From Chlorokybus atmophyticus (lineage: Eukaryota > Plantae > Mesostigma and Chlorokybus algae), in NCBI GenBank assembly GCA_009103225.1, contig RHPI01001327.1, forward strand, positions 282,666 to 346,665: 64,000 bases of DNA. Reading direction: 5' to 3'. The notes below the pieces were generated by a model. The model saw only the letters and a list, made by a program, of their open reading frames with translations, was not told the DNA's origin and searched no databases. The position numbers and the translations under genes were made by a program. Positions 5,938-64,000 of this stretch are shown in pieces. Position 1 is the first letter of the stretch; each line of letters opens with the position of its first letter.

Positions 5938-6790
5938 CGGCGCCTTGCTCTCTTTGCGGTACCCTGATGTATATGTTAATCTGCTAGGTTTCCTTCAACT
6001 TACACGATCTATGCACTCTATACGAAGAGTGTTACAATGAGATCACTCATTGACAAGGGGTGATTGCAAGCTCAGTTGGTTAGGTTAGCAAATGGGTTGA
6101 CAATTTGAGTACATAGCCATGCCGCATGCAGCGTTGAAAGCTTGTAGCTTGCATAATAAGCTTGCAACTGCTAGGATGAATTGCTTTAGCATGTTGGTTG
6201 TAAACAAACGCTTTATAAACCATGACGCCCACGTGCTTAAACAGCTTGTTCACTATGATATGCGTGCCCGCATGTGTGTGAAGTGCAAGTGTGTGTACAA
6301 AGATGGAGTGCTGATAAGACCGCAGGCATGCGGTCATAAGCATGAGACATGCATGTTGTCATGCACAGAATGCTCTTGGAGATATGTACACGCCGCAAGC
6401 AAACGGTAGGCAGCAGTCATAATGCTATGTCACTACCCGGCTAGGTAATTCTAACACGCTAAGCTACCACTACTTGGCTCCCCGTTAGTCATGCATGCAT
6501 GTATGTTCCATTATTTGGCAGCAGCAGTCATGCACGTATGTGTGAAGAATTGCAACCCTAAGTTGCTGACTTATGTTTGCTTACAAGCGTACACTCAACT
6601 GGTCAAACAGCCACACATAGTATTGGTGGCTTGTACATATCGTTTACACGTTTTATACAAGAGTTGAGCATATAAAATTATCTCAAGCAATGGTTCCATT
6701 CAAAGGCTGAATTATTAATATGAATATAGATTACAAGCGAATGCAAAAAGACTGTTGATTAACTATATGAAACTGCATTTATAAGAAAGA

Positions 6791-7705
<915 letters not shown>

Positions 7706-8329: not shown

Positions 8330-9591
<1,262 letters not shown>

Positions 9592-20136: not shown

Positions 20137-20880
20137 TCAACTCTCAACTGAATCAAGGCATGCCTCCTTTTCTACTTCATCATCGTCCGGAGCTTTGCGC
20201 TTGCTGGAACGTTGCGCGTGCAGCTGTGTGATCGACATTGCTTTTCCTAAACGGTGTTGTGCTGGGTCATTCCTGTGAGCATCAAGTTGCGATGCTGCAT
20301 CCTCGGAAATGTGAAGGTCCTTGGCCGTCTTCATTACGTGCTGATATGTGATGTTGCGCTTGTCAAAAGCTTCGCCATGGCGCGGTCTCCCAACCACCAC
20401 GCAGTCTTATACAATTGCACAAGCTCTCTAGCTGCTGGCCCACCATCCAAGCCAGATGTGTATTCCGTCCAGATGTCTATCACAGTAGACAACTCCTTCT
20501 GCAACTAATACCTTGGTGGAACGTCGCGTGCACTCTGAGCTTCAGGAGGTTGTCGCGATGTTGTTTGACGATGTGCATCTCTTGTAGACGCTGCAACAGA
20601 GGGTACGCCATTGCATGCTGAGCTGTCCGAAACGAATTGCACTCCCTGCTGTGTGAATCCTCCACAGATCATACGCTCCATGCGAGCAAGTTAGCATCCA
20701 CATATGCCTCAAAGGCAATTAGCATCTGCTGCTGCGCTGTTACATCGTGCATCACCATCTGCAATAGCCGCTTTTGCTGTCGCATGATGACGGCAATCTT
20801 GACAAGAGTCAATATCAACATATGTTGATTCATACATACATGCATGCTATCAATTGTGTATAAACAGTTTGACACAATAG
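20137..20880 (-). pseudogene. CryptonF-type relic: coiled coil plus GCR1_C-like domain, frameshifted
   Basis: The reverse strand reads ELSTVIDIWTEYTSGLDGGPAARELVQLYKTAW..., then after a frameshift FDKRNITYQHVMKTAKDLHISEDAASQLDAHR. This aligns by eye with the GCR1-like domain at 59836-60080 (ATVVDVWTEYVRGIDGGPAVQELDRKFGSAW...KRNVLY...ISEDDAARSLD). Confidence 0.75.
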
Positions 20881-21891: not shown

Positions 21892-24800
21892 ATGGTAAGA
21901 AGTTTCGTTGTGTGCAGTATGCTGCGCGTACAGCTGCCAGCTGTACGCGCCGGTTTGCATGCTGCTTAGATGTCATCGGGTTGCCAACAAGTTGCTGGGG
22001 TAGTTGTTGTCCAGATGGAAGGATGCACGTAATTGCTTGTTTGATGGTACCTCGGGTTCGGAATGACGTGCGTTTTGCTGTGGAAGCTATGTGCTTTGCA
22101 GATATGGGCTTTCATGCGGTTTCTTGGGTCGCTCTCTGGGTTTGCGTTTGGGCGCTATGGTCTTCCAGAGCTGTGGTTCGCAGCTTCATACCGTTCGTTG
22201 TTGGTACGGTTGCTTATGCGATGGCTGTGCGAACAGGTCAAGTTTACGATCGAGGAGATTCGCGGTATCATGGACAAGCAGAACAACATCCGTAACATGT
22301 CTGTGATTGCCCATGTCGACCACGGTGAGTTGCCCGCTTACTGTGTCTAGGATGCGTGCTGATGCTCATATGTAGCAACGTAAAGGCAGTCAATATCATT
22401 GTTAGGGTTAGCACCGCTAGTTGCTGTGCGACTGCAGGTCGGCAGGTAAAGCCGCTGAGCTATGGTTGTGCTGCAGGCAAGTCAACACTGACAGATTCAC
22501 TGGTGGCCTCTGCTGGTATCATTGCTGTGGAGTCTGCTGGCGATGTCCGCCTTACAGATACCCGTCAGGATGAGCAGGATCGCGGTATCACTATCAAGTC
22601 TACCGGTATCTCCTTGTACTACCAAATGAGCGAGGCTTCTCTTGAGGTGTGTTTAGTTCCGGAATGCTTGTCATATGAAGGCAACATTGATGCTCAACCG
22701 CATCAATTTGGTAGGGGCTGGAAGGTACTCGTCAAGGCAACGACTTCCTCATTAACCTGATTGACTCTCCTGGGCATGTCGACTTCTCTTCAGAGGTGAC
22801 GGCTGCCCTGCGTATTACTGATGGTGCGTTGGTGGTGGTGGACTGCGTGGAGGGAGTGTGTGTGCAGACAGAGACAGTGCTTCGCCAAGCGCTTGGTGAA
22901 CGTATTAGGCCTGTAAGTTTTGTTACTCAATAGATGCCTTATTTGTATTCACCATTGCTGTTGCAACCTTGCTAACCTCTGTGAGTGAACAGGTGTTGAC
23001 TGTGAACAAGCTGGATCGTTGTTTCCTTGAGCTTCAGCTTGAGGCCGAGGAGGCTTACTTGACCTATCAGCGTGTGATTGAGAATGCCAATGTCATCATT
23101 GCCACCTATGAAGACAAGCTGCTTGGTGATGTGCAGGTAAGAGTTCCAAGCTTATCTACTGCCCTGTTTGTCATGTCCGGTACCCGTGACTATGACGCCG
23201 TAATTGTCTCTCACAAACGCAGTTGATTTAGTGCCCTGTTTGTGGCAGGTTTACCCTGAGAAGGGTACTGTCTCTTTCTCAGCCGGCCTGCACGGTTGGG
23301 CCTTCACACTGACTTCCTTTGCCAAGATGTATGCTGACAAGTTCGGCATTGATGTCAAGAAAATGATGGAGAAGCTGTGGGGTGACAACTTCTTTGATCC
23401 TGCCACCAAGAAGTGGACAAAGAAGTCAACTGGCACGGCCACCTGCAAGCGTGGTTTCTGTCAGTTTGTTTATGAGCCCATTCGTGTTGTGATCGATGCT
23501 GCCATGAACGATCAGCGCGACAAGCTATTCGCTATGCTTGGAAAGCTGGGCGTTGACAAGAAGCTGAAGCCGGAAGACAAGCAGCTCATGGGCAAACCAC
23601 TGATGAAGCGTGTCATGCAATGCTGGCTGCCGGCTAACGAGGCACTGCTGGAGATGATGATTCATCACCTCCCCTCCCCGGCAAAGGCACAGAAGTACCG
23701 TGTGGAGAACTTGTACGAGGGTCCGTTGGACGACAAGTACGCACAGGCCATCCGGTCTTGTGACCCTGAAGGGCCTCTCATGATGTATGTGTCGAAGATG
23801 ATTCCTGCCGCAGACAAGGGTCGGTTCTTTGCCTTCGGGCGCGTCTTCGCCGGCAAAATCTCCACTGGCATGAAGGTCCGCATTATGGGCCCCAACTATA
23901 TCCCCGGCCAGAAGAAGGATCTGTACAACAAGAGTGTCCAGCGCACTGTGCTGTGCATGGGCAGGCGACAGGAGTCCGTGGAGGATGTGCCTTGTGGCAA
24001 CACAGTCGCACTTGTTGGTCTGGACCAGTTCATTACCAAGAATGCCACCCTCACTGGCGAGAAGGAAGTGGACGCTCACCCTATCAAGGCCATGAAGTTC
24101 TCTGTCTCCCCTGTCGTGCGTGTCGCTGTTGAGTGCAAGGTGGCCTCCGATTTGCCCAAGCTGGTGGAAGGTCTGAAGCGGCTTGCCAAGTCGGACCCTA
24201 TGGTTCTCTGCAGCATTGAGGAGACTGGCGAGCACATTATTGCTGGAGCTGGCGAGCTTCACTTGGAAATTTGCCTCAAGGATCTGCAGGACGACTTCAT
24301 GGGTGGTGCCGAGATTCGGGTTTCTGACCCCGTCGTGTCGTTCCGCGAGACTGTTGCTGACAAGTCAGATCACACCTGCATGTCCAAGTCGCCAAACAAG
24401 CACAACAGGTTGTACTTTGAGGCTCGCCCTCTTGAGGAGGGTCTTGCTGAGGCGATTGATGAAGGCCGCATTGGCCCACGCGATGAGCCCAAGGCTCGCG
24501 GAAAGATTCTCACTGAGGAGTTTGGCTGGGATAAGGAAGTTGCGCGCAAGATCTGGTGCTTTGGCCCTGACACTACGGGACCCAACCTGGTGGTGGACAT
24601 GTGTAAGGGAGTGCAGTATCTGAATGAAATCCAAGACTCCATTGTTGCCGCATTCCAGTGGGCAACCAAGGAGGGCGTGCTTTGCGAGGAGAATATGCGC
24701 GGCATTGCCTTTGAAGTGTGCGACGTGGTGCTGCACACAGATGCTATCCATCGTGGTGGTGGCCAGATTATCCCAACTGCCCGCCGCGTGTTCTATGCTT

Positions 24801-25183
24801 GCCAGCTTACCGCCCGCCCTCGTCTGCTCGAGCCCGTGTACCTTGTGGAAATCCAGGCACCTGAGAACGCCTTGGGCGGTATCTATGGTGTCCTGAATCA
24901 AAAGCGTGGCCATGTATTTGAGGAAATGCAGCGTCCCGGCACCCCCATCTACAACATCAAGGCATACCTGCCTGTCACAGAGTCTTTTGGCTTCACAAGC
25001 ACCCTGCGCGCTGCGACATCAGGACAGGCCTTCCCCCAGTGTGTGTTCGATCACTGGGACGTGATGAACAGCGATCCCCTTGATTCAACAACCACCTCCG
25101 GTCAGCTGGTGCTGGATGTGCGCAAGCGCAAGGGCATCAAGCCAACGGTACAGCCCCTCGCTGAGTATGAGGACAAGTTGTAA
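21892..25183 (+). CDS. EEF2: Eukaryotic translation elongation factor 2
   Basis: ATG|intron|[21 protein letters not shown]|[16 protein letters not shown]-type motif (DRGITIKS), [30 protein letters not shown], and the diphthamide loop [13 protein letters not shown]. The long last exon ends EYEDKL*. Confidence 0.99.
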
Positions 25184-25649
25184 GCTGGGCATCTTGGACA
25201 TTTTGTCACTCGTAGGGCTGTGTATTGCATATTACAGTTGGAACAATGACCATGGCGCAGCTAGTAGGGCTTATTAGTAGCGCAGGTGGCACGCATCTAT
25301 AGCATGATTTTCCTGTTGTTTGTTTATACTGGTACAGTGGGTTGCGTTGTTGCTGTCCATGTGTGCCAGTGCTGTGCTCTTGTACTGGTTGATCATTTGC
25401 GTGTTGCTTGCGCAGAGGTTGTCTGCTTCCCATTTCACAACTCTATCTGCAGAATGTTTGCGCCTGCTCTGTGTGGCAGTCTGGCCAGTGCCTGCCTGGC
25501 TGGGCGGATTCATCAAGGACTGTCTTAAAATGCGCTGGCAGACTTCACGCAGAATGTAGCTCTGGGGCCGTACGCGCAGTTAATAAGTCTTAGAGCATGT
25601 CTTTTTCGTTGGCTGCATTTCGTTCATTGAGATAGATCACTCTGTGCGA

Positions 25650-26097
25650 ACCATGAAGGTTTATTTTCTAGGGATGAGCTGCGTACATAAAACCAATGCA
25701 GTGTGCAGAAACTCTCCAAGACTATTCTACACATGCAATAATTGACTTGCACGCATGCAACATGTTGAGCACCAACTTGCGCCTTTTGTCTGGTAAGCTC
25801 GGTTGCATACTGTGCGTTGCTGCGATGTGAATGTATACAGAAAATGCGCAACACGTATGCACATGCACGATTGTGCTCACCATGAAGGCTATTATTCTAG
25901 GGATGAGTTGTGTACGTAAAACCAATGCAGTGTGCGGAAACTCTCCAGGACTATTCTACACATGCAATAATTGCCTTGCACGCGTGCAACATGTTGAGCA
26001 CCAACTTGCGCCTTTTATCTGGTAAGCTCGGTTGCATACTGTGCGTTGCTGCGACGTGAATGTGTACAGAAAATGCGCAACACGTATGCACATGCAT
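25650..26097. repeat. Tandem direct duplication with a unit of about 229 bp, 2 copies
   Basis: ACCATGAAGG...CACGTATGCACATGCA occurs at 25650 and again at 25879 with scattered substitutions. Confidence 0.9.
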
Positions 26098-34300: not shown

Positions 34301-37300
34301 ATGGGCAGAAGCAAACACAAGGGTAAACACAAAGGTGCTGAGGCTATACAGGTGAAGGTCAACTTGGCGCTCGCCTCTGAGTTGCCTTCAGATGATGTCG
34401 ACCAGACCACGCCGACTTCAGAGTCGGAGGAGCAGTTGACCCCTCTGCTGGACGTCAGTTTAACGCCATCAGCCTCTCATGACGGGCCATTACCTGCCGA
34501 GGAGCTGGCAGCGGAACGCTCTCAACAGCTGAGCAGCAATGTTGATGCAACCAGTGAAGTGCCAGCACCTGTACAGGATGCTGCAACGGACAACGTGTCG
34601 TCCACAGCTATTGCAGCAGACTTGGATTCGGAGCTGGATGCTGCACCGTCGAGTCCCCCGCTGACTGATGAAGTCCATGAGGAGCCCTCAACAGTTTCAA
34701 TTGAAGAGGCAGCTGCAGTTGTTGGGACAGACGAAGTACCTGCACCTGATGCTAAGGCGGCAGCTGCTCTCCCTGATGAGCATGGCAACTCATCTAGTTC
34801 TCTACCATCTGTGGCAATTGCTGGCGAGCCCGCCGTCGGACTGGACTCAGACACTCAGGAGGTGGATGCGGCGCCATCAAGTCCCCCACTGCCTATTGAA
34901 GTCCACAGCGAGCTTTCAACAACTGCATTTGGAGAGGGCGTGCATTTGCAAGACGCGATAGCTACAGCTCATGATGTTGAGACGGCAGCTGCCCTTCCTG
35001 ATGAAGCCCACGATGAGCCCTCAACAACTGCAGCAGGAGGGGGTGTCAATCTGCAGCATGCCACAAGTCATGATGGTGACACGGCAGCGGTTCTCCTTGA
35101 TGTTGTCCACGCCAAGCCCTCAGGAATTGCAGCAGCAGAGAGCGTGGATTCGCAGGAAGCGGCAGCTCATGATGGTGAGACATCTGCCCTTCCTGATGAA
35201 GTCTACGATGAGCCCTCAACAAGCGCAACAGGAGAGGGCGTGGGTTCGCAGGACGCGGTAACTCATGTTGGTGAGACAGCAGCGGCCCTCCCTGATGAGC
35301 GTGACAACACAGTCAACTCTCCTCCTCCTATGGCAATATATGAGGAGCGCAGCGCTAGCCAGTCTGCTCCCGTGCCATTAGAAGGTGTAGGAGCTGTGGC
35401 CTCAACATCTGCAACAGGCGAAGGCATGAGTTTGCAGGACGTGGTAGCTGCCGGTCATGATGTTGAGATTGCAGTTGTTCTCGCCGATGAGCGTGACAAA
35501 GAAGAATCCACTCCTCCACCACCTGTGGCAAGCGAAGCCAACCTCATGGCCAGCCAGTCTGCTCCAGTGCCATCACCAGTCAGTTTACTGGAACCAGAAA
35601 GTGCAGGTGATTCTGCTGTTTGGGCCAAGCATAATGGTTCAACATCATTATTTCCTGCATTAGCGCAGGCCGATGTGCATAGCAACTCATTGCTGCCGAC
35701 AGATGGCATGGAGCCTGCGTTGCCAGCAGCCCACGCAGTTGAAAGCAATAATGTCAAGCAACTTGATGGTTTGATGTCAGCATCCCCTGCGATAGTGCAG
35801 GCCGATGTGCACAATAACTCCTCCGTGCTAGACAGCATGGAGCCTGTGTTGCCACCGGCCCCCGCAGTCGAAAGCAATGTTGCCATCGCAGCTCAGTTAC
35901 CCGAGACAAGTGTGCAAACCTTGTCTGTGGCAGCAGTTCCTGCAAGGCAAAACACGTCGGGCAGTGGCCACATATCATCACCTACGCAAGCTGTTAAAGA
36001 TGATATTGATAGGCGCTTGCAAGCTGCTGAGGTTGCCAGCCTGAGGCAAGCTAAACAGGAGCTAGAGACCAAGCTGATCAAGTTGCAGAAAGGGCTTAGA
36101 AACCGCATGAAGGAGCTTGCAAACGAGAAGCAGGACATGCAGCTGCAGCTCGATACGGCTTCCCAACGGGCTGCAGAGTTGGAAGCGCAACTTCATGAAC
36201 AGCGAGCACTTGCCGAACAACAGGCTGCTGCACATGCAGATAGCGCTGCGCGGTTGCAGATGCAAATCGGAAGGCTTGCTGAAGAGCTGGCAAATTCTCA
36301 TTCTGAACTTGAGCTGCGCGAGCGGGCGCTGACTGAGTCCCGGCGTATGGCTTCTGCCAAGGAGCAATCTGTTCTTGACCTGCAGCACACTTTGGAGCAG
36401 TTGAATTTGCAGCACAAGGACACTCAAGCTCAAGAGGAAGAGAAGTTTGCTCAGCTAACTGCACAGTTGGCCCAGTCACAAGCAGATCTGCAGCACAACC
36501 GCGATGAGCTCGTGCAAGCGAGAGCCCACACCGATTCACGCATTGTAGAACTGGAAACCCAGCTTGCAGCCGCTGCTGCTGATGCAGAAACTGCCTCCGC
36601 CAAAGCGGCAGAGGAGGCCGCAACGCTAGAGGCAGCGCTTGAGGTCGTCAAGGCAGACCTCAACAGGCGGACCCGCGAGCAAGACGGCGAACGCGAGCGC
36701 GTGAAGGTGGCAATGGTTGAGATGCGGAAAAAGGTGGAACGGGCAGAAGCCGCCAGGCGCAAGGCTGTTGCTTCAGCCGATGGGGTGAAGGAGGTGTTGG
36801 AAAATGAGTTACAGCAGTCCAACACAGCCCGTAACATTTTAGAAGAAGAGCTCGCTGCTGCCAAGGACCAACTTGTCAGATTACAAGAAGAGCTCAGGTC
36901 CTACAAGCAGCGTGCGCAGATGCTGCTGAAACGTAAGGTGGGCAACTGCAGTTCTGACCATAACATCATGTGCGTTTCTTTGCACAGCTTACTCACAATC
37001 ACAATGCTTGCAGGACGAAGAGTTGTTGGCTTCTGCCACCGCCAAACGCAACCAAGCTGCCGAGCAGGCCCTGCATGAAACCCAGCAAGCTTTGCAAGAG
37101 ATTCTAGCAGAGCGAGATGCTTCTGTCAGGGCAATCAGTGAGATGGCCCAGCAGCATCAAGACGAGTTGGCGACATACGAAGAGGCTGCCATCGCCCGCG
37201 AGCAGCGCATAGCAGACCTCCAGCAGCAGTTTGACTTGGCAAGCATGGAGGTGGTTCGCGTTGCAGATGAATGGCGTACACGCTGCGAGACAGTTGAACG

Positions 37301-53849: not shown

Positions 53850-56800
53850 CTCCTCCCCCCCTAGGTGAGCTTCGTCCTCGAAGCTCTCGAGGATTCTCTG
53901 GTCGTCGTTGCAAATACTGTTGCAGGATATTGTGCATTGGCCAAGTGCTCCTCCGGTTCCCAAGTGGCTTCATGCATCGGGTAGCTTTTTCACTTCATCA
54001 AATATTTGCGCACGCTGCGCACCAACCTCTCACCCAATATGTCCTCCACTGCGTATTCCATATGACCTTCCATAGCCAACTCAGGCGGTGGACGCAATGT
54101 TGGCTCTCTTCGATATGATTTCAGCAGGGATATGTGAAAGACAGGTGGATGTGCATAGAGTCGGGCAGTTGCAACTTGTACGCCACGTTCGAAACCACTT
54201 TGATGACTTAAAATGGCCCAAGCCAGCGCTCACTTAACTTGCGAACTGCAGCACGCACCTGTAACTTCCTCGCAAAAAGCAATACCATGTCGCCTTCGCG
54301 AAATGTGACATGTCGGCGATGCGCGTCTGCATACTGTTTTTGTCTATCTTGTGCCACTAATAGCGCCTCTCTGGCTGCCTTATTGATGTCCGCACATATT
54401 GTAAGAAAATCGCTTACTGCTTCCACATCAACGTCACTTTGTCGCGCTGTCCACGCCGTTAGCGGTGTCAGCGGGTGTTGGCTGTGGTTCATGAGACAGG
54501 GGGTGACACCCGTGCTTGCATTGGTGTGGTTGTTGATGGCGAGTTCCAGCACTTTCAGCAAATCTGCTCAATTGTCTTGCCGAGCATTTACGTAGCAGCG
54601 CAACATATCTTCGAGCACACGGTTGGCTCGCTTCCTTTGGCCATCAGTTTGCGGGTGGAAAGCCGTGCTAAACTTTAAGGTAGTACCCAGTGCACTATGC
54701 AGCGCCAATCAATATTACTTGTGAAGCGGGAATCACCATCGCTCACAATGCTTCGTGGTAGTCCGTGGGAACGAAAGACATGCTTTATAAACAAGCTTGC
54801 TGCATCTGGTGCCGTGCAAGACTCACAACACGGTGCCAAGCGTACTATTTTGCTGGTTTTGTCTACGAACACGAGTAGTGCGTCGTACCCTTATGTTGTC
54901 TTCGGCAGCCCCGTAATCAAGTCCATAAAAACTTGCTCCCATTTGGACAATAGCACGGGGAAGAGCTTGTAGCAACCCACCTGGCTTTTGGTTGCTTGTT
55001 TTCACCCTTTGACATGCGTCGCACAACACCACATAGTCGCGTACATCACGATGCACTCTGCCGCCAGTAAAAGCATTGTTTCAAGCTTGCCAACGTCCTC
55101 TCCACTCCTTGGTGGCCAGCAATGGGTATGTCATGAGCTTCCCCTAAAAGTTGAACGCGCATATGTGCAACATTGCGGATGTACAAGCGGCCATGATGCC
55201 ATAGTAGGCCGTCTTGCTTTGTCCAATGTCCACTTGTGTCCGTTGCTGTGCTCTCCATGTCCCGCAAGACTCTCCTACCTTTTATGTCTTCGCAGAGCAC
55301 TTGTCGGATCTGATCGGCCCACTCTGGTTGCGCTTGAGCGAGTGCTTCAATCGCATTCAACCGGCTTAGCGCGTCGGCCAAACTATTAGACGTACCGGGC
55401 TTGTACTTGATCTCAAAATCAAAAAGTTGCAATAACTCCAACCATCGCGCTTGTCTTCGGCTCACATGTGGTTGTGTCTGTAAGTACCTCAATGAGGAAT
55501 GGTCCGTCTCCAGCATGAACTTTTTGCCCTTAAGCATCGCCATTGTCGCAGCGCCATCACTTGCGCCAATAGCTCCTTCTTGTGCACAGGGTTCAGCTTT
55601 GCTCCACTCATTTTTTAAGTAAAAAACGCTGCAGGTTGAAGACCCATGCCTTGGTCTTGCTGTAACCCAGCTCCCACAGCTGGGTCGGATGCGTCACAAG
55701 CCAAAATGAGGGGTTTGTCTATGTCGGGGTGAGCCAAGACGGGTGCCTCTGTCAACGCCTTCTTCAACGCAGCAAATGCATGCTCTTCCTTTGTAGACCA
55801 GCTCCAAGACTTCCCTTTCTTGAGTAGGGTGGTCAAAGGGGTTGCAATGCGCGAAAATCCCATAATGAATTTGCAATAATGCCCCGCAAGGCCCAAGAAC
55901 AACATTACCTCCTTCACGTCGGTCGCGGCAGACCATTTGCGCACCACTTGCACTTTATTGGGGTCCGGCTTGATTCCTTCGTGTGACACAATGTGGCCCA
56001 GGTACTCCACCTCGCGTAGCAGAAACATGCACTTATGTAGCTGAGCATACAACTTGTGCTCGCGTAAACGCTGCAACACGCGCCGTAGAAGACTCACATG
56101 CTCGTCCTTCATCTTCGAGTACATTAGAATGTCGTTGAGGTACACGAGAGATCCCTTACCCAGCAAGTCAGCAAGAACACTGTTCATCAATGTCTAAAAT
56201 GTCGCTGGCGCGTTCTTTAGCCCAAACAACATCACTAACTACTCATAATGTCCATAGCGCGTGTTGAACGCTGTCTTCTCCATGTCCTCAGGTGCGATGC
56301 GGATCTGATGGTAACTCCCAGCAAGATCAAGTGTGATACTTCGCACTTTGAAGCTGCTCCAGCATCTCGTCAATACGCGGGAGTGAAAAGCAGTTCTTCT
56401 TTGTAATGGTGTTGAGCACTCGGTAGTCAATGCACATACGCAGGCTCCCGTTCTTTTTTTGCATGAACAATATTGGTGCACCATAAGGTGACTTACTTGG
56501 CCGGATGTAGCCTCTTTTTCAGAAGATCCGCTATCTGCGTCTCGGCCTCCTCCAACTCTAGAGGTGACAACATATAGGCCTGTAGGGTGGCTTGTGCACG
56601 CCCTCAATTAATACCACACGGTGATCAACGCTCTGTGAGGGTGGCAGACCAGCTGGAAGTCCGTCTATCACGATATCTTGGTAGTCCTGAACAAGTTTGC
56701 ACACCTCGTGGTCCATCGTAGCTGTCTTAATGCAGTCAGCTTGGGTGCTGACTTTAATGTGCTCTGAAGCACCACGCACAACCATGCAACCTTCGCTTCT

Positions 56801-56860
56801 TGTGGGGATAGCAGCCTCTTCAATTGCACATGGGAAACATGAGCAATGCTAATCCTACCT
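53181..56860 (-). mobile_element. 5'-truncated, decayed Ty3/Gypsy chromovirus (RT, RNase H, integrase, chromodomain, PPT, 3' LTR)
   Basis: RT: SPYGAP..., [40 protein letters not shown], with YLDD mutated to YLND. RNase H: ACDAS, ETDHSSL, RRQARW. Integrase: AHDIPIAGHQG..CDAC. Chromodomain: EYAVEDILGER..KYLMK*KSYPMHEATWEPEEHLANA. No gag, protease or 5' LTR is seen. Confidence 0.95.
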
Positions 56861-56899
56861 GATTGCGCGTGCCGTGCCTTTCACACGGAACTTTTTCCA

Positions 56900-57000
56900 C
56901 GGACCAGCCCTGGTCCGCACGTACGGACGAGGGCCAAAACGCCCGGGCGGCGGACCAAGGTCGCCCGCCTTGGTCTGCACGCGGGGACTAGGGCTAGTCC
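56900..57000. other. GC-rich hairpin cluster (left part of a palindrome-rich segment split by the MITE)
   Basis: CGGACCA-gccc-TGGTCCG; GCGGACCAAGG-7 nt-CCTTGGTCTGC; GGACTAG-gg-CTAGTCC. Confidence 0.75.
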
Positions 57001-57008
57001 AAACGGTA

Positions 57009-57471
57009 CAGTCTACCCCTTTTAAAAGCATACCCTTTATTCTCCGCTATCTTATGCTCTTGGGTAATTCTCTTGACGTCCAAGAGCACGTTATGCTCTT
57101 GAGTGTCAAGAGCATAAACATGCTTTAAGCGCGGTTTCATCATGCCCATCACGCCCGTTACGTCACGCGCATCACGTCACGTCCGTCGCGTCGTCACCTT
57201 AATTACGCTGATTGCGCGTCATACTTGCCTATCACGCCCTAATCGTCACACTCATCACGCCTTATGCCACACCCGTCACGTCTCCTCCCTCGATGCTAGA
57301 AATTTACACACTCAAACTTGCAAGAATTTTATCCAAAAACATATGCTCTTCGCGGTTAGTCATATTCTCTTAAGCACTAACATTTGCCTGTAAAACCATC
57401 GATTATCTCACATTCTATGCTGTTAGCAGGGTTAGTCTCTTGGAGCGAAGTCTCTTAGCGGGGGTAGACTG
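57009..57471. mobile_element. Tc1/mariner-type MITE (463 bp)
   Basis: TIR CAGTCTACCCC ... GGGGTAGACTG flanked by TA on both sides (57007-57008 and 57472-57473). Subterminal ATGCTCTT/GTCTCTT repeats and internal ATCACG repeats are present. There is no ORF. Confidence 0.85.
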
Positions 57472-59515: not shown

Positions 59516-59688
59516 NNNNNNNNNNNNNNNNNNNNNNNNNNNNNNNNNNNNNNNNNNNNNNNNNNNNNNNNNNNNNNNNNNNNNNNNNNNNNNNNNNNNN
59601 NNNNNNNNNNNNNNNNNNNNNNNNNNNNNNNNNNNNNNNNNNNNNNNNNNNNNNNNNNNNNNNNNNNNNNNNNNNNNNNNNNNNNNNN
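59516..59688. other. Assembly gap (N run)
   Basis: 173 consecutive N. Confidence 0.99.
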
Positions 59689-59724
59689 AGCGTAAAAGTG
59701 CAATCTACAAGCACGGCATGCTTA

Positions 59725-62113
59725 TCAACTATCAGCACCAGTGCTGCGCTTGCTAGGGCGCAACAAGTCTGTCAACTCTGCCACTGATAATGCTCGCGAG
59801 CCTTTACCATTGTGTAGCTGCTTTTGTTGTTGCTCTCATTGCACATCCAGACTCCGAGCAGCATCGTCTTCTGAAATGGCCTTTGACGCTGCCATCTCCT
59901 TGATGGCTTTGTACAAGACATTGCGTTTCCCATATTGCTTGCGCATGCGCTCGTTGCCGCACCGCCAGGCAGATCCAAACTTTCGGTCCAACTCCTGCAC
60001 TGCTGGGCCCCCATCGATGCCACGCACATATTCTGTCCATACATCAACAACGGTAGCCATGTTTACTGCCATCTGGTACGGAGGAGGTGGTGGCGCATCC
60101 ACAGGCTCATATGCAGTCGTGGTTGCTTGCGCGGCTGTGGACTGAGCGGCAGCATCATGTACCTCAACCCTTGCCGGTGGCTCGTTCGCTCGCCTATGAC
60201 GACGATGTCGCTTGCTTGGTCGTTGACCGCGGGGATGCACCTGCTGAGTGGTCGTCGACACTAACGGTAAAGTGATGTGTAGCCCAGCTGCAATTGTACG
60301 CAGATAGCCTTCGTGGACATGCATGCGAGCCTTGATCTGCTGCAACTCAGAGTCTTGACTCTGATTGCTCGCCTTCAGCTCATGCACTGACCTCTTCACC
60401 GACAGCACCGAGTCCTGTGTCGCCTTCATAATTGCATGGTTGTCTTGCAAAATGACAGCGAGCTGTTTCACAAAACTGTGCATGTAAGAGGCTGTGCATG
60501 TAGTCTGTGTGTATGAACAGCTCTTACAACTAGTGCTGTGTATGTGCAATGCTTGCATCTGTAGCAATACGTACCCGATCCGGCAGTTCGTCATACTGTG
60601 TATTAGCGTCCACCACGGACTCATTATGCGACGCCACCACTTCGTCCGCCCATTCATCAAATTTTGCATTTTGAAACAACTCGTGTTCACAAACAGAAAG
60701 TGTAGGGAAGCCATCAACTGTTTCGCCACATAGTTGCATGTTTTCTTATCGCATAATGGCGACATCCTGCCAGCAAGAAGACATGCATCAAAGCATGCAC
60801 AAGGCACAAGTTTCTGAACAACCATAAACATACCTGCCCTACAACATCGCGCAAGTAGTCAAGCAACTCTAAATGCTTAAATGCTGCAAAGTCCCGCTCT
60901 TGATCTCTGCCATGCAAACACCGCTGCAAGAGCCAAGTTCGTATATGAGGGACATGTACGCTGGCAGCCATAAACAACGACAATGCACTTGCTTAATCAT
61001 AAGCGAGCAAGCAATACCTTTCGCACATCATTCAGTGCAATCTCCAAGCCGGGAAAATTTTGAGTGCGGATGTTTTGTGGCAAGCGGAACCGCGAACGAG
61101 CCAACACATGCTTGTTAGGGTGATTTAGATGTCCATGCCCTACAATGCAATTGTAGATAAATACATGCAAAATCATCAGACCATTACAGTGACTGTGCCG
61201 TTGTTACCTGCAATAATTGCGCATGTTGTGACGTCCAGCTGTGTGACGTAGGACAGGTTGAAATGGTCATTATTCCATCGGCCATGTTGCTTCACACCAC
61301 TTTCTGTAGCCCTGCATCATAGTAATGTCAATTTTTATGTACATCATCAAGCTGTCGATCAAGTAGACATGTCCACACCCTCCATCTACTTACCCAGCGT
61401 GCATTGCCTGCTGTGATGATTCTTTGCGCGACGCATGAACTTTAGACCTGCCCGTCACAATGCCGCATTCCCGGAATCCCTCGCATGCGTGGTTGTATTG
61501 TTGTCTGTAGGTCAGGTGCTGACCCTCTTTCTCACCAGGGAATAGAGGCTCTCCATACCTGTAACTCCGCATTCATAAGATGGGCACGCACTTGCACACT
61601 ACCGCACGCACCGCACGCACCAGGTTGCCCGTGATGTGAAGTCCGGAAATGGTCGCTGCAGCATATGGTACTTATGAAATCAATGGAATGCTAGCGCATT
61701 GTGCCAACATCCTATTGGACTCCAGTGGCGCAGACCTCCGAAATGCTCCGTGTTGCCATTCTATGCACAAGCATAGCAACGTTTGCAACTATGAAACACG
61801 GAAACGTCATGTGCCACAACATGATCGACAGATGTTAATGAGTACCTTGTTCATCTTTCCATTGCGAGATACAAAGCAAATCATCACACCAAGGTCCGGC
61901 CCTAAAGAGTTCTGAGGAAGTTTGTAATTATAGAAGTCACACTCTTCGCAAGCCCTTGCAACGTCGCCGCGCGTGAGGCATGTATGTCGCAACGCTAGAT
62001 CTAATCTGCATGTTGCCAAAATTAACAACATGAAAGATATATTGTTGTGCGTGAGCAGACTGAGCTCTCAACCATACCTTGCTCTTAAAGCCGCTGCTTG
62101 CTTGGGGATGTTA
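59725..62113 (-). mobile_element. CryptonF-type DNA transposon gene: intron-containing tyrosine recombinase (NDC10_II-like) plus C-terminal GCR1_C-like domain; pseudogenised and 5'-truncated
   Basis: Exons: ALRA|RLDLALRHTCLTRGD..VSRNGKMNK|NGNTEHFGGLRH..GCWHNALAFH*FHKYH..PFPDFTSRATW|YGEPLFPG..KVHASRKESSQQAMHAG|ATESGVKQHGRWNNDHFNLSYV..|LELLDYLRDVVGQ|DVA..HELFQ..F..; C-terminus YQMAVNMATVVDVWTEYVRGIDGGPAVQELDRKFGSAWR. Catalytic R, K, HxxR, W and Y can all be identified. There are three in-frame stops. Confidence 0.85.
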
Positions 62114-64000
62114 TTGTCTTCGGCTCACATGTGGTTGTGTCTGTAAGTACCTCAATGAGGAATGGTTCGTCTCCAGCATGAACTTTTTGCCCTTAAGAAA
62201 GCATCGCCATTGTCGCAGCGCCATCACTTGCGCTAATAGCTCCTTCTTGTGCACAGGGTTCAGCTTTGCTCTACTCACTTTTTAAGTAAAAAACGCTACA
62301 GGTTGAAGACCCATGCCTTGGTCTTGCTGTAACACAGCTCCCACAGCTGGGTCGGATGCGTCACAAGCCAAAATGAGGGGTTTGTCTATGTCGGGGTGAG
62401 CCAAGACGGGTGCCTCTGTCAACGCCTTCTTCAACGCAGCAAATGCATGCTCTTCCTTTGTAGACCAGCTCCAAGATTTCCCTTTCTTGAGTAGGGTGGT
62501 CAAAGGGGTTGCAATGCGCGAAAATCCCATAATGAATTTGCGATAATGCCCCGCAAGGCCCAAGAACAACATTACCTCCTTCACGTCGGTCGCGGCAGAC
62601 CATTTGCGCACCACTTGCACTTTATTGGGGTCCGGCTTGATCCTTTCGTGTGACACAATGTGGCCCAGGTACTCCACCTCGCGTAGCAGAAACATGCACT
62701 TATGTAGCTGAGCATACAACTTGTGCTCGCGTAAACGCTGCAACACGCGCCGTAGAAGACTCACATGCTCGTCCTTCATCTTCGAGTACACTAGAATGTC
62801 GTTGAGGTACACGAGAACTCCCTTACCCAGCAAGTCAGCAAGAACACTGTTCATCAATGTCTAAAATGTCGCTGGCGCGTTCTTTAGCCCAAACAACATC
62901 ACTAACCACTCATAATGTCCATAGCGCGTGTTGAACGCTGTCTTCTCCATGTCCTCAGGTGCGATGCGGATCTGATGGTAACTCCCAGCAAGATCAAGTG
63001 TGATACTTCGCACTTTGAAGCTGCTCCAGCATCTCGTCAATACGCGGGAGTGAAAAGCAGTTCTTCTTTGTAATGGTGTTGAGCACTCGGTAGTCAATGC
63101 ACATACGCAGGCTCCCGTTCTTTTTTTGCATGAACAATATTGGTGCACCATAAGGTGACTTACTTGGCCGGATGTAGCCTCTTTTTAGAAGATCCGCTAT
63201 CTGCTTCTCGGCCTCCTCCAACTCTAGAGGTGACAACATATAGGCCTGTAGGGTGGCTTGTGCACGCCCTCAATTAATACCACACGGTGATCAACGCTCT
63301 GTGAGGGTGGCAGACCAGCTGGAAGTCCGTCTATCACGATATCTTGGTAGTCCTGAACAAGTTTGCACACCTCGTGGTCCATCGTAGCTGTCTTAATGCA
63401 GTCAGCTTGGGTGCTGACTTTAATGTGCTCTGAAGCACCACGCACAACCATGCAACCTTCGCTTCTTGTGGGGATAGCAGCCTCTTCAATTGCACATGGG
63501 AAACATGAGCAATGCTAATCCTACCTGATTGCGCGTGCCGTGCCTTTCACACGGAACTTTTTCCACGGACCAGCCCTGGTCCGCACGTACGGACGAGGGC
63601 CAAAACGCCCGGGCGGCGGACCAAGGTCGCCCGCCTTGGTCTGCACGCGGGGACTAGGGCTAGTCCAAACGGTACAGTCTACCCCTTTTAAAAGCATACC
63701 CTTTATTCTCCGCTATCTTATGCTCTTGGGTAATTCTCTTGACGTCCAAGAGCACGTTATGCTCTTGAGTGTCAAGAGCATAAACATGCTTTAAGCGCGG
63801 TTTCATCATGCCCATCACGCCCGTTACGTCACGCGCATCACGTCACGTCCATCGCGTCGTCACCTTAATTACGCTGATTGCGCGTCATACTTGCCTATCA
63901 CGCCCTAATCGTCAAACTCATCACGCCTTATGCCACACCCGTCACGTCTCCTCCCTCGATGCTAGAAATTTACACACTCAAACTTGCAAGAATTTTATCC
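62114..64000. repeat. Near-identical second copy of 55451-57340 (Gypsy RT/RNase H, hairpin cluster and MITE left part)
   Basis: Offset is about 6663-6667 bp, with the same ORFs and only scattered substitutions or small indels. The MITE copy begins at 63675 and runs off the window. Confidence 0.95.

Follow-up and report, generated by a model that had tools for sequence, protein, structure and literature searches.

The minus strand of Chlorokybus atmophyticus DNA between about 59.8 and 62.1 kb of the window (the whole 64-kb stretch that was analysed) carries short coding pieces that resemble a tyrosine recombinase, and after them a GCR1_C domain. The question is what such a gene represents in a green alga: a transposon, a host gene descended from one, part of the retrotransposon that adjoins it, or DNA from another organism. 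Recombinase plus GCR1_C is the architecture of the CryptonF transposons, which were defined in fungi and oomycetes by Kojima and Jurka (PMC3212892), and the yeast proteins Gcr1, Msn1, Hot1 and Cbf2/Ndc10 are derived from CryptonF (PMC3212892). The initial annotation of the locus, made from the sequence, made the same statements about fungi, oomycetes and the Ndc10/Gcr1/Msn1/Hot1 regulators, and they agree with that source; it also placed the DNA in a green-lineage genome, and the host is a streptophyte alga. The analysis below makes it very probable that the nuclear genome of Chlorokybus atmophyticus holds, at this locus, a CryptonF-type DNA transposon copy that has become a pseudogene and lost its 5' part.

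Gene organization

Translation of positions 62300-59690 in three frames gives a frame-switching ladder of short open pieces, the last of which is open for 340 codons. Splice sites were picked from the sequence and then checked by script, and the splicing described here is a predicted one. The resulting model has nine exons, the first of them a fragment, running on the minus strand from 62113 to 59836 and encoding a Crypton-type tyrosine recombinase followed by GCR1_C. The eight introns are, in order, 72, 85, 62, 82, 68, 94, 67 and 112 nt long (range 62-112 nt), and all eight have GT-AG ends. When the codons are walked over the exon boundaries, which is how the stops were counted, the nine exons give 544 codons in a single frame, and the exon ends match the breaks in the profile coordinates given below. 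That GT-AG exons can be spliced into a tyrosine recombinase, as first proposed, is upheld.

The exon 1 fragment (62078-62113) is open to the breakpoint and ends in the donor AAG/GTATGG; it contains only 12 codons with no profile match of their own, and is assigned by its frame continuity with exon 2. The first catalytic arginine (LTRGD) and the catalytic lysine (NGKMNK) are encoded by exon 2 (61846-62005), and the H-x-x-R box (VHASR) by exon 4 (61394-61558). Between them lies exon 3 (61621-61760), which consists of two profile-matching pieces and bears an in-frame TGA at 61680-61682. Exon 5 (61208-61311) encodes the tryptophan (HGRWN) and the nucleophilic tyrosine (LSYVT), and exon 6 (61018-61139, containing LARSRFRLPQNIRTQNFPGLE) the region right after the catalytic tyrosine, where the model is backed by the frame and the splice sites. 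Exon 7 (60834-60923, RCLHGRDQERDFAAFKHLELLDYLRDVVGQ) has a profile match and is preceded by the acceptor CTCTTGCAG, which closes the frame. A second in-frame stop, TAA at 60746-60748, is found in exon 8 (60575-60766). Exon 9 (59836-60462, coding from 60462 to 59839) encodes a coiled-coil linker, the basic stretch KRHRRHRR and GCR1_C, and ends with the terminal stop of the gene, TGA at 59838-59836. All nine exons are on the minus strand.

A frameshift at the junction of exons 6 and 7, which would follow from an acceptor at 60961, was considered and dropped, as the stronger acceptor at 60924 keeps the frame closed. The number of internal in-frame stops varies with this choice. Three premature stops had been reported in the initial annotation where only two are found here, and the third probably came from a different choice of the exon 7 acceptor.

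The tyrosine recombinase

For the recombinase part a profile was made from eight full-length relatives of exon 9, 606-733 aa in length (P0130, P0102, P0060, P0094, P0080, P0057, P0142 and P0056). Pfam finds the CryptonF architecture in all eight of these chosen proteins, with NDC10_II (PF16787; E 1e-31 to 6e-77) ahead of GCR1_C, and the named ones among them come from Nothophytophthora (an oomycete), the fungus Tilletia indica and the liverwort Riccia sorocarpa. When this eight-protein HMM was run against the 2482 stop-free six-frame pieces of the whole window, a collinear chain was obtained on the minus strand at 59.8-62.1 kb. Only this chain and another GCR1_C remnant, at about 20 kb, reach E<0.1, and the next of the 2482 pieces has an E-value of 1.5; the profile match of the chain is not due to chance. 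Weak tblastn matches of the recombinase pieces near 13 kb were set aside as chance matches, being located in a proline-rich, host-like ORF that is missed by the profile.

Within the chain, which is entirely on the minus strand, the piece 61810-62067 (exon 2) matches profile positions 165-216 with an E-value of 2.4e-3, and the two pieces of exon 3, 61683-61760 and 61602-61679, match positions 218-241 (E 0.053) and 244-263 (E 4.5e-3). They are followed by 61393-61572 (exon 4, positions 264-317, E 1.7e-4), 61179-61316 (exon 5, positions 318-352, E 8e-4), 60717-60992 (exon 7, positions 379-419) and 60533-60745 (exon 8, positions 422-461, E 2.6e-3), and the last piece, containing exon 9, matches positions 427-639 with an E-value of 1e-30. 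The profile positions thus meet across the inferred introns, in the order 165-216, 218-263, 264-317, 318-352, 379-419, 422-461 and on to 639.

The exon searches were run one exon at a time, and the single-exon E-values are modest, from 1e-5 to 0.07. With hhalign against the alignment A1, exon 2 matches columns 173-222 (E 4.3e-5), exon 4 columns 270-319 (E 2.3e-4) and exon 5 columns 324-350 (E 1.3e-5), exon 7 is matched with an E-value of 2.1e-3, and exon 6 has a weak match to columns 366-391 (E 0.066); these placements agree with those obtained with the HMM. The A1 profile itself matches the solved Ndc10/Cbf2 structures with an E-value of 1.7e-18. In a Pfam scan of ten minus-strand pieces, with exons of 19-57 aa, no single recombinase exon piece matched NDC10_II or an integrase at E<=1, and two recombinase pieces searched with phmmer matched none of the PDB sequences at E<=10.

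The motifs named in the initial annotation (TRGD, NGK, HASR, GRW and LSY) are all present and fall on the conserved catalytic columns of the CryptonF-type proteins. In the alignment with the eight references LTRGD is located at the LxRGEN column, NGKMNK at QGKTNQ, VHASR at THxGR, HGRWN at AGRWN and LSYVT at CYLT, so that the catalytic set R, K, H-x-x-R, W and Y is complete. The assignment as a tyrosine recombinase, for which the eight-protein profile and the collinearity of its matches are the basis, appears sound.

The GCR1_C domain

GCR1_C (PF12550) is detected by Pfam in exon 9 with an E-value of 5.1e-18 (65.6 bits, cut-off 23), and the match in the last open piece spans 77 of the 80 model positions, in accordance with the domain first suggested for this region. 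The GT-AG introns join it in frame to the recombinase exons, as part of the same gene. The CryptonF architecture that had been proposed, an NDC10_II-like recombinase with a full catalytic set and a C-terminal GCR1_C domain, is supported.

Exon 9 by itself (59839-60462, 208 aa) has 608 relatives in a HMMER search of a library of 1.84 billion proteins, 45 of them at E<=1e-10, and the best identity to this last exon among the library proteins is 48%. When the last ORF piece was used in a word-based search of proteins, limited to candidates of 187-595 aa, no match was obtained. The top-scoring relatives of exon 9 (P0001-P0023 and P0024) contain 3-7 GCR1_C domains in tandem. They are mostly metagenomic, and include a protein of the fungus Gryganskiella, 1337 aa long with 7 matched stretches, and another of the chytrid Phlyctochytrium. 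NDC10_II is absent by Pfam from P0001 and P0024, the two tandem proteins that were scanned, and proteins of this kind may be domesticated Crypton DNA-binding arrays.

A second GCR1_C remnant is located at 20140-20504 on the minus strand (Pfam E 3.8e-8). It is split by a frameshift, shares about 39% identity with the main one, and lies about 2.7 kb from an elongation factor 2 gene. No recombinase pieces were found upstream of it with the eight-protein profile, and it probably marks an older or a different Crypton lineage.

The 5' junction and the state of the copy

The Crypton copy breaks off sharply at 62113/62114, where it adjoins a central part of a Ty3/gypsy pol. The fragment from 62114 to 64000, also on the minus strand but no part of the Crypton, encodes a reverse transcriptase and the first part of an RNase H (RVT_1, RT_RNaseH and RT_RNaseH_2 in Pfam). 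Over 1888 bp it shares 98.8% identity with 55451-57334; this similarity ends exactly at 62114, and from 62113 downward the sequence is unrelated. The sister copy at 55 kb goes on into the remaining RNase H and an Integrase_H2C2 domain. Both Ty3/gypsy copies of the window, 55046-57334 and 62114-64000 on the minus strand, have internal stops, and the second is cut in the middle of RNase H.

Profile positions 1-164 have no match to the eight-protein HMM anywhere in the 64-kb window, and the N-terminal part of about 160 residues, ahead of the catalytic domain, is missing from the Crypton copy. Since the start of its gene is missing, the junction is not that of a clean Crypton insertion, and since there is no LTR at 62113/62114, it is not that of a clean gypsy insertion either. 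Crypton and gypsy are both broken here, at a point of rearrangement or deletion. On the other side the stop codon is followed by 147 bp of 3' flank (59689-59835, minus strand), which runs straight into an assembly gap of 173 N in the sequence (59516-59688). CryptonF elements are expected to have short terminal direct repeats of 4-6 bp that match the target site; the break against gypsy has cost this copy its 5' end, and its 3' side enters the N gap, so that no terminus is definable here.

With two in-frame stops and about 160 N-terminal residues missing the copy is dead. The full catalytic set and 16 of 16 splice dinucleotides are kept, which suggests that the decay is not far advanced. Of the transposon described in the initial annotation, the CryptonF-type identity holds, as that of a relic; it is not an intact element, since it has two stops and a 5' truncation. 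The truncation, and the N gap in which the 3' flank ends, are additions to the initial annotation.

Other features of the window

The window contains several features of the host genome. An elongation factor 2 (EF2) ORF of 659 codons is located at 23204-25183 on the plus strand; it is 100% identical to EukProt jgi/Chlat1/8027 (Chrsp7S07764), a gene model of Chlorokybus atmophyticus, which identifies the host, and its next-best matches, mostly land-plant proteins, are 77-85% identical. Just downstream of EF2, at 25643-26096, a 229-bp unit is present in two tandem copies (93% match). In an ORF piece at 8923-9591 (+), which belongs to a host ribosomal protein gene, Pfam recognises the Ribosomal protein S12/S23 domain (E 9e-41). 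The 925-codon uninterrupted ORF at 34301-37078 (+) has no Pfam match; its N-terminal half is acidic with repeats of about 99 bp (34897-35280), its C-terminal half has many Ala, Glu, Gln and Leu residues and a coiled-coil appearance by eye, and it is probably a host structural gene. A near-perfect (AG)n microsatellite of 917 bp with about 458 copies, located at 6784-7700, causes the extreme GC and AT skew of the 6-8 kb bin.

Alternative explanations

The sharp break at 62113/62114 could also mean that the Crypton is interrupted rather than truncated, with a damaged gypsy element inside it and the missing 5' exons located past position 64000. The gypsy fragment does reach the edge of the window, and the Crypton frame is open up to the junction; however, the junction cuts through the gypsy RNase H at mid-domain and is not at an LTR end, which a simple retrotransposon insertion cannot give, and an extra deletion would be required, so we regard an interrupted copy as rather unlikely. 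The position of a reverse transcriptase and RNase H directly upstream and on the same strand likewise brings to mind a DIRS-like retrotransposon with a tyrosine recombinase, in which RT/RNase H and recombinase are found in one element and to which both the recombinase gene and the adjoining RT/RNase H would then belong. Here the reverse transcriptase is of the Ty3/gypsy type with its own integrase, as the remaining RNase H and the Integrase_H2C2 zinc-binding domain of the sister copy show, and the similarity of the two RT copies stops abruptly at 62114. The recombinase for its part has a GCR1_C domain and matches NDC10_II-type proteins, and eight introns are unexpected in a retroelement ORF, which together make a DIRS-like origin extremely improbable. 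The locus has no reverse transcriptase, LTR or DDE transposase of its own, as expected of a CryptonF, and the adjoining RT/RNase H belongs to a gypsy family with an integrase of its own; its protein is incomplete, but a defective copy is no argument against membership of the family.

A decayed host gene, once domesticated from a Crypton like Ndc10 or Gcr1, would account for the many introns, which are common in host genes, and for GCR1_C and NDC10_II, which are shared with the domesticated yeast genes (PMC3212892). A domesticated Crypton is expected to be an intact host gene that has lost its catalytic site, whereas the Chlorokybus ORF is truncated and bears stops but has kept every catalytic residue; the locus is moreover flanked by retrotransposon copies, a second and divergent GCR1_C remnant is present in the window, and introns are found in the Chlamydomonas CryptonF as well (PMC9977147). 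A host-gene origin is accordingly very unlikely, and with its two stops, its 5' truncation and the divergent remnant elsewhere in the window, the locus is a transposon relic and not a domesticated gene. Foreign DNA, either a fungal or oomycete contaminant or an assembly chimera joined over the N gap, might be suspected as the gap at 59516-59688 parts the Crypton stretch from the rest of the window and most of the named relatives are fungal or oomycete. Against this, the identity to every reference is just 25-28%, and the gypsy fragment that adjoins the Crypton shares 98.8% identity with its sister copy beyond the gap, on the same side as EF2; near-identical gypsy sequences on both sides indicate that both come from one genome, and contamination or a chimera is hardly credible.

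The truncated CryptonF copy is thus the preferred reading. An intact element of this kind would consist of one intron-containing gene encoding a tyrosine recombinase of the Ndc10-domain-II type with the residues R-K-H-R-W-Y, a coiled-coil linker and a C-terminal GCR1_C domain, whose role is probably DNA recognition. By analogy with the other members of its family such an element should have been mobile. The Chlorokybus copy is an inert relic of it, about 160 residues short, with two stops, and fused at its 5' break to a gypsy pol.

Comparison with known CryptonF elements

The closest parallel by description is CryptonF-1_cRei, which López-Cortegano et al. (PMC9977147) found to be the most active transposon of Chlamydomonas strain CC-2931. 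It is drawn with recombinase, GCR1_C and introns, ends in CACCG and targets CAYCG (PMC9977147). Like it, the Chlorokybus element resides in a green-lineage host, consists of one intron-containing gene for a tyrosine recombinase with GCR1_C, and has no reverse transcriptase of its own (PMC9977147). The two elements are here likened by their descriptions, and they differ in that the host of CryptonF-1_cRei is a chlorophyte and Chlorokybus is a streptophyte. CryptonF-1_cRei is intact, with defined ends and with insertion and excision observed (PMC9977147), whereas the Chlorokybus copy is truncated, bears stops and has no recoverable ends. As a CryptonF with introns has thus already been published from a green alga (PMC9977147), only the host is new, and the description of the locus as an under-described green-algal family overstates its novelty. 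In the CryptonF literature searched Chlamydomonas was the sole green-lineage host found, and in the literature searched no paper names Chlorokybus and Crypton together.

The two-domain architecture is shared with the fungal and oomycete CryptonF elements (Crypton-Cn1 and others; PMC3212892), with profile-level homology over the recombinase, the linker and GCR1_C, and the per-exon identity of the Chlorokybus copy to the eight references is 25-28%. It is unlike them in having a gene with eight short introns. NDC10_II and GCR1_C are also joined in the "Ndc10 domain-containing proteins" of the liverwort Riccia sorocarpa (P0102 cluster, about 714 aa), another streptophyte, but Riccia P0102 is 26% identical to the Chlorokybus copy and no nearer to it than the fungal and oomycete proteins. 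Riccia sorocarpa has at least five such NDC10_II and GCR1_C proteins (P0102 and P0152-P0155) in one 90%-identity cluster, encoded on contigs of three different lengths, which has the appearance of a young land-plant Crypton family. The recombinase-like domain II and GCR1_C are homologous to those of yeast Ndc10/Cbf2 (PDB 4ACO and 6GYP) and of Gcr1, Msn1 and Hot1 (PMC3212892). The yeast genes are domesticated and single-copy, and Cbf2 and Gcr1 have not kept the catalytic site of their recombinase-like part (PMC3212892); in Chlorokybus, unlike Cbf2 and Gcr1, all catalytic residues are present but the gene is broken.

Distribution and significance

One dead copy has little weight alone, yet the locus adds a data point, namely the presence of CryptonF-type elements among the earliest-diverging streptophyte algae, Chlorokybus being the deepest streptophyte branch. 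It also shows how CryptonF-type genes can evade ORF-based annotation, as exons of 90-190 nt are too short for single scoring by Pfam. In the green lineage CryptonF-type genes are now found in the chlorophyte Chlamydomonas (PMC9977147), in Chlorokybus and in the liverwort Riccia, and Chlorokybus probably has at least two Crypton lineages, 39% identical, in one 64-kb window. This spread might tentatively be taken to mean that CryptonF has long resided in the green lineage and has been passed on vertically there, although we regard that as doubtful. If it were true, the fusion of recombinase and GCR1_C would predate the split between plants and the fungi and oomycetes and would not reflect a recent horizontal transfer, and the Ndc10/Gcr1 DNA-binding module would be older than the fungi.
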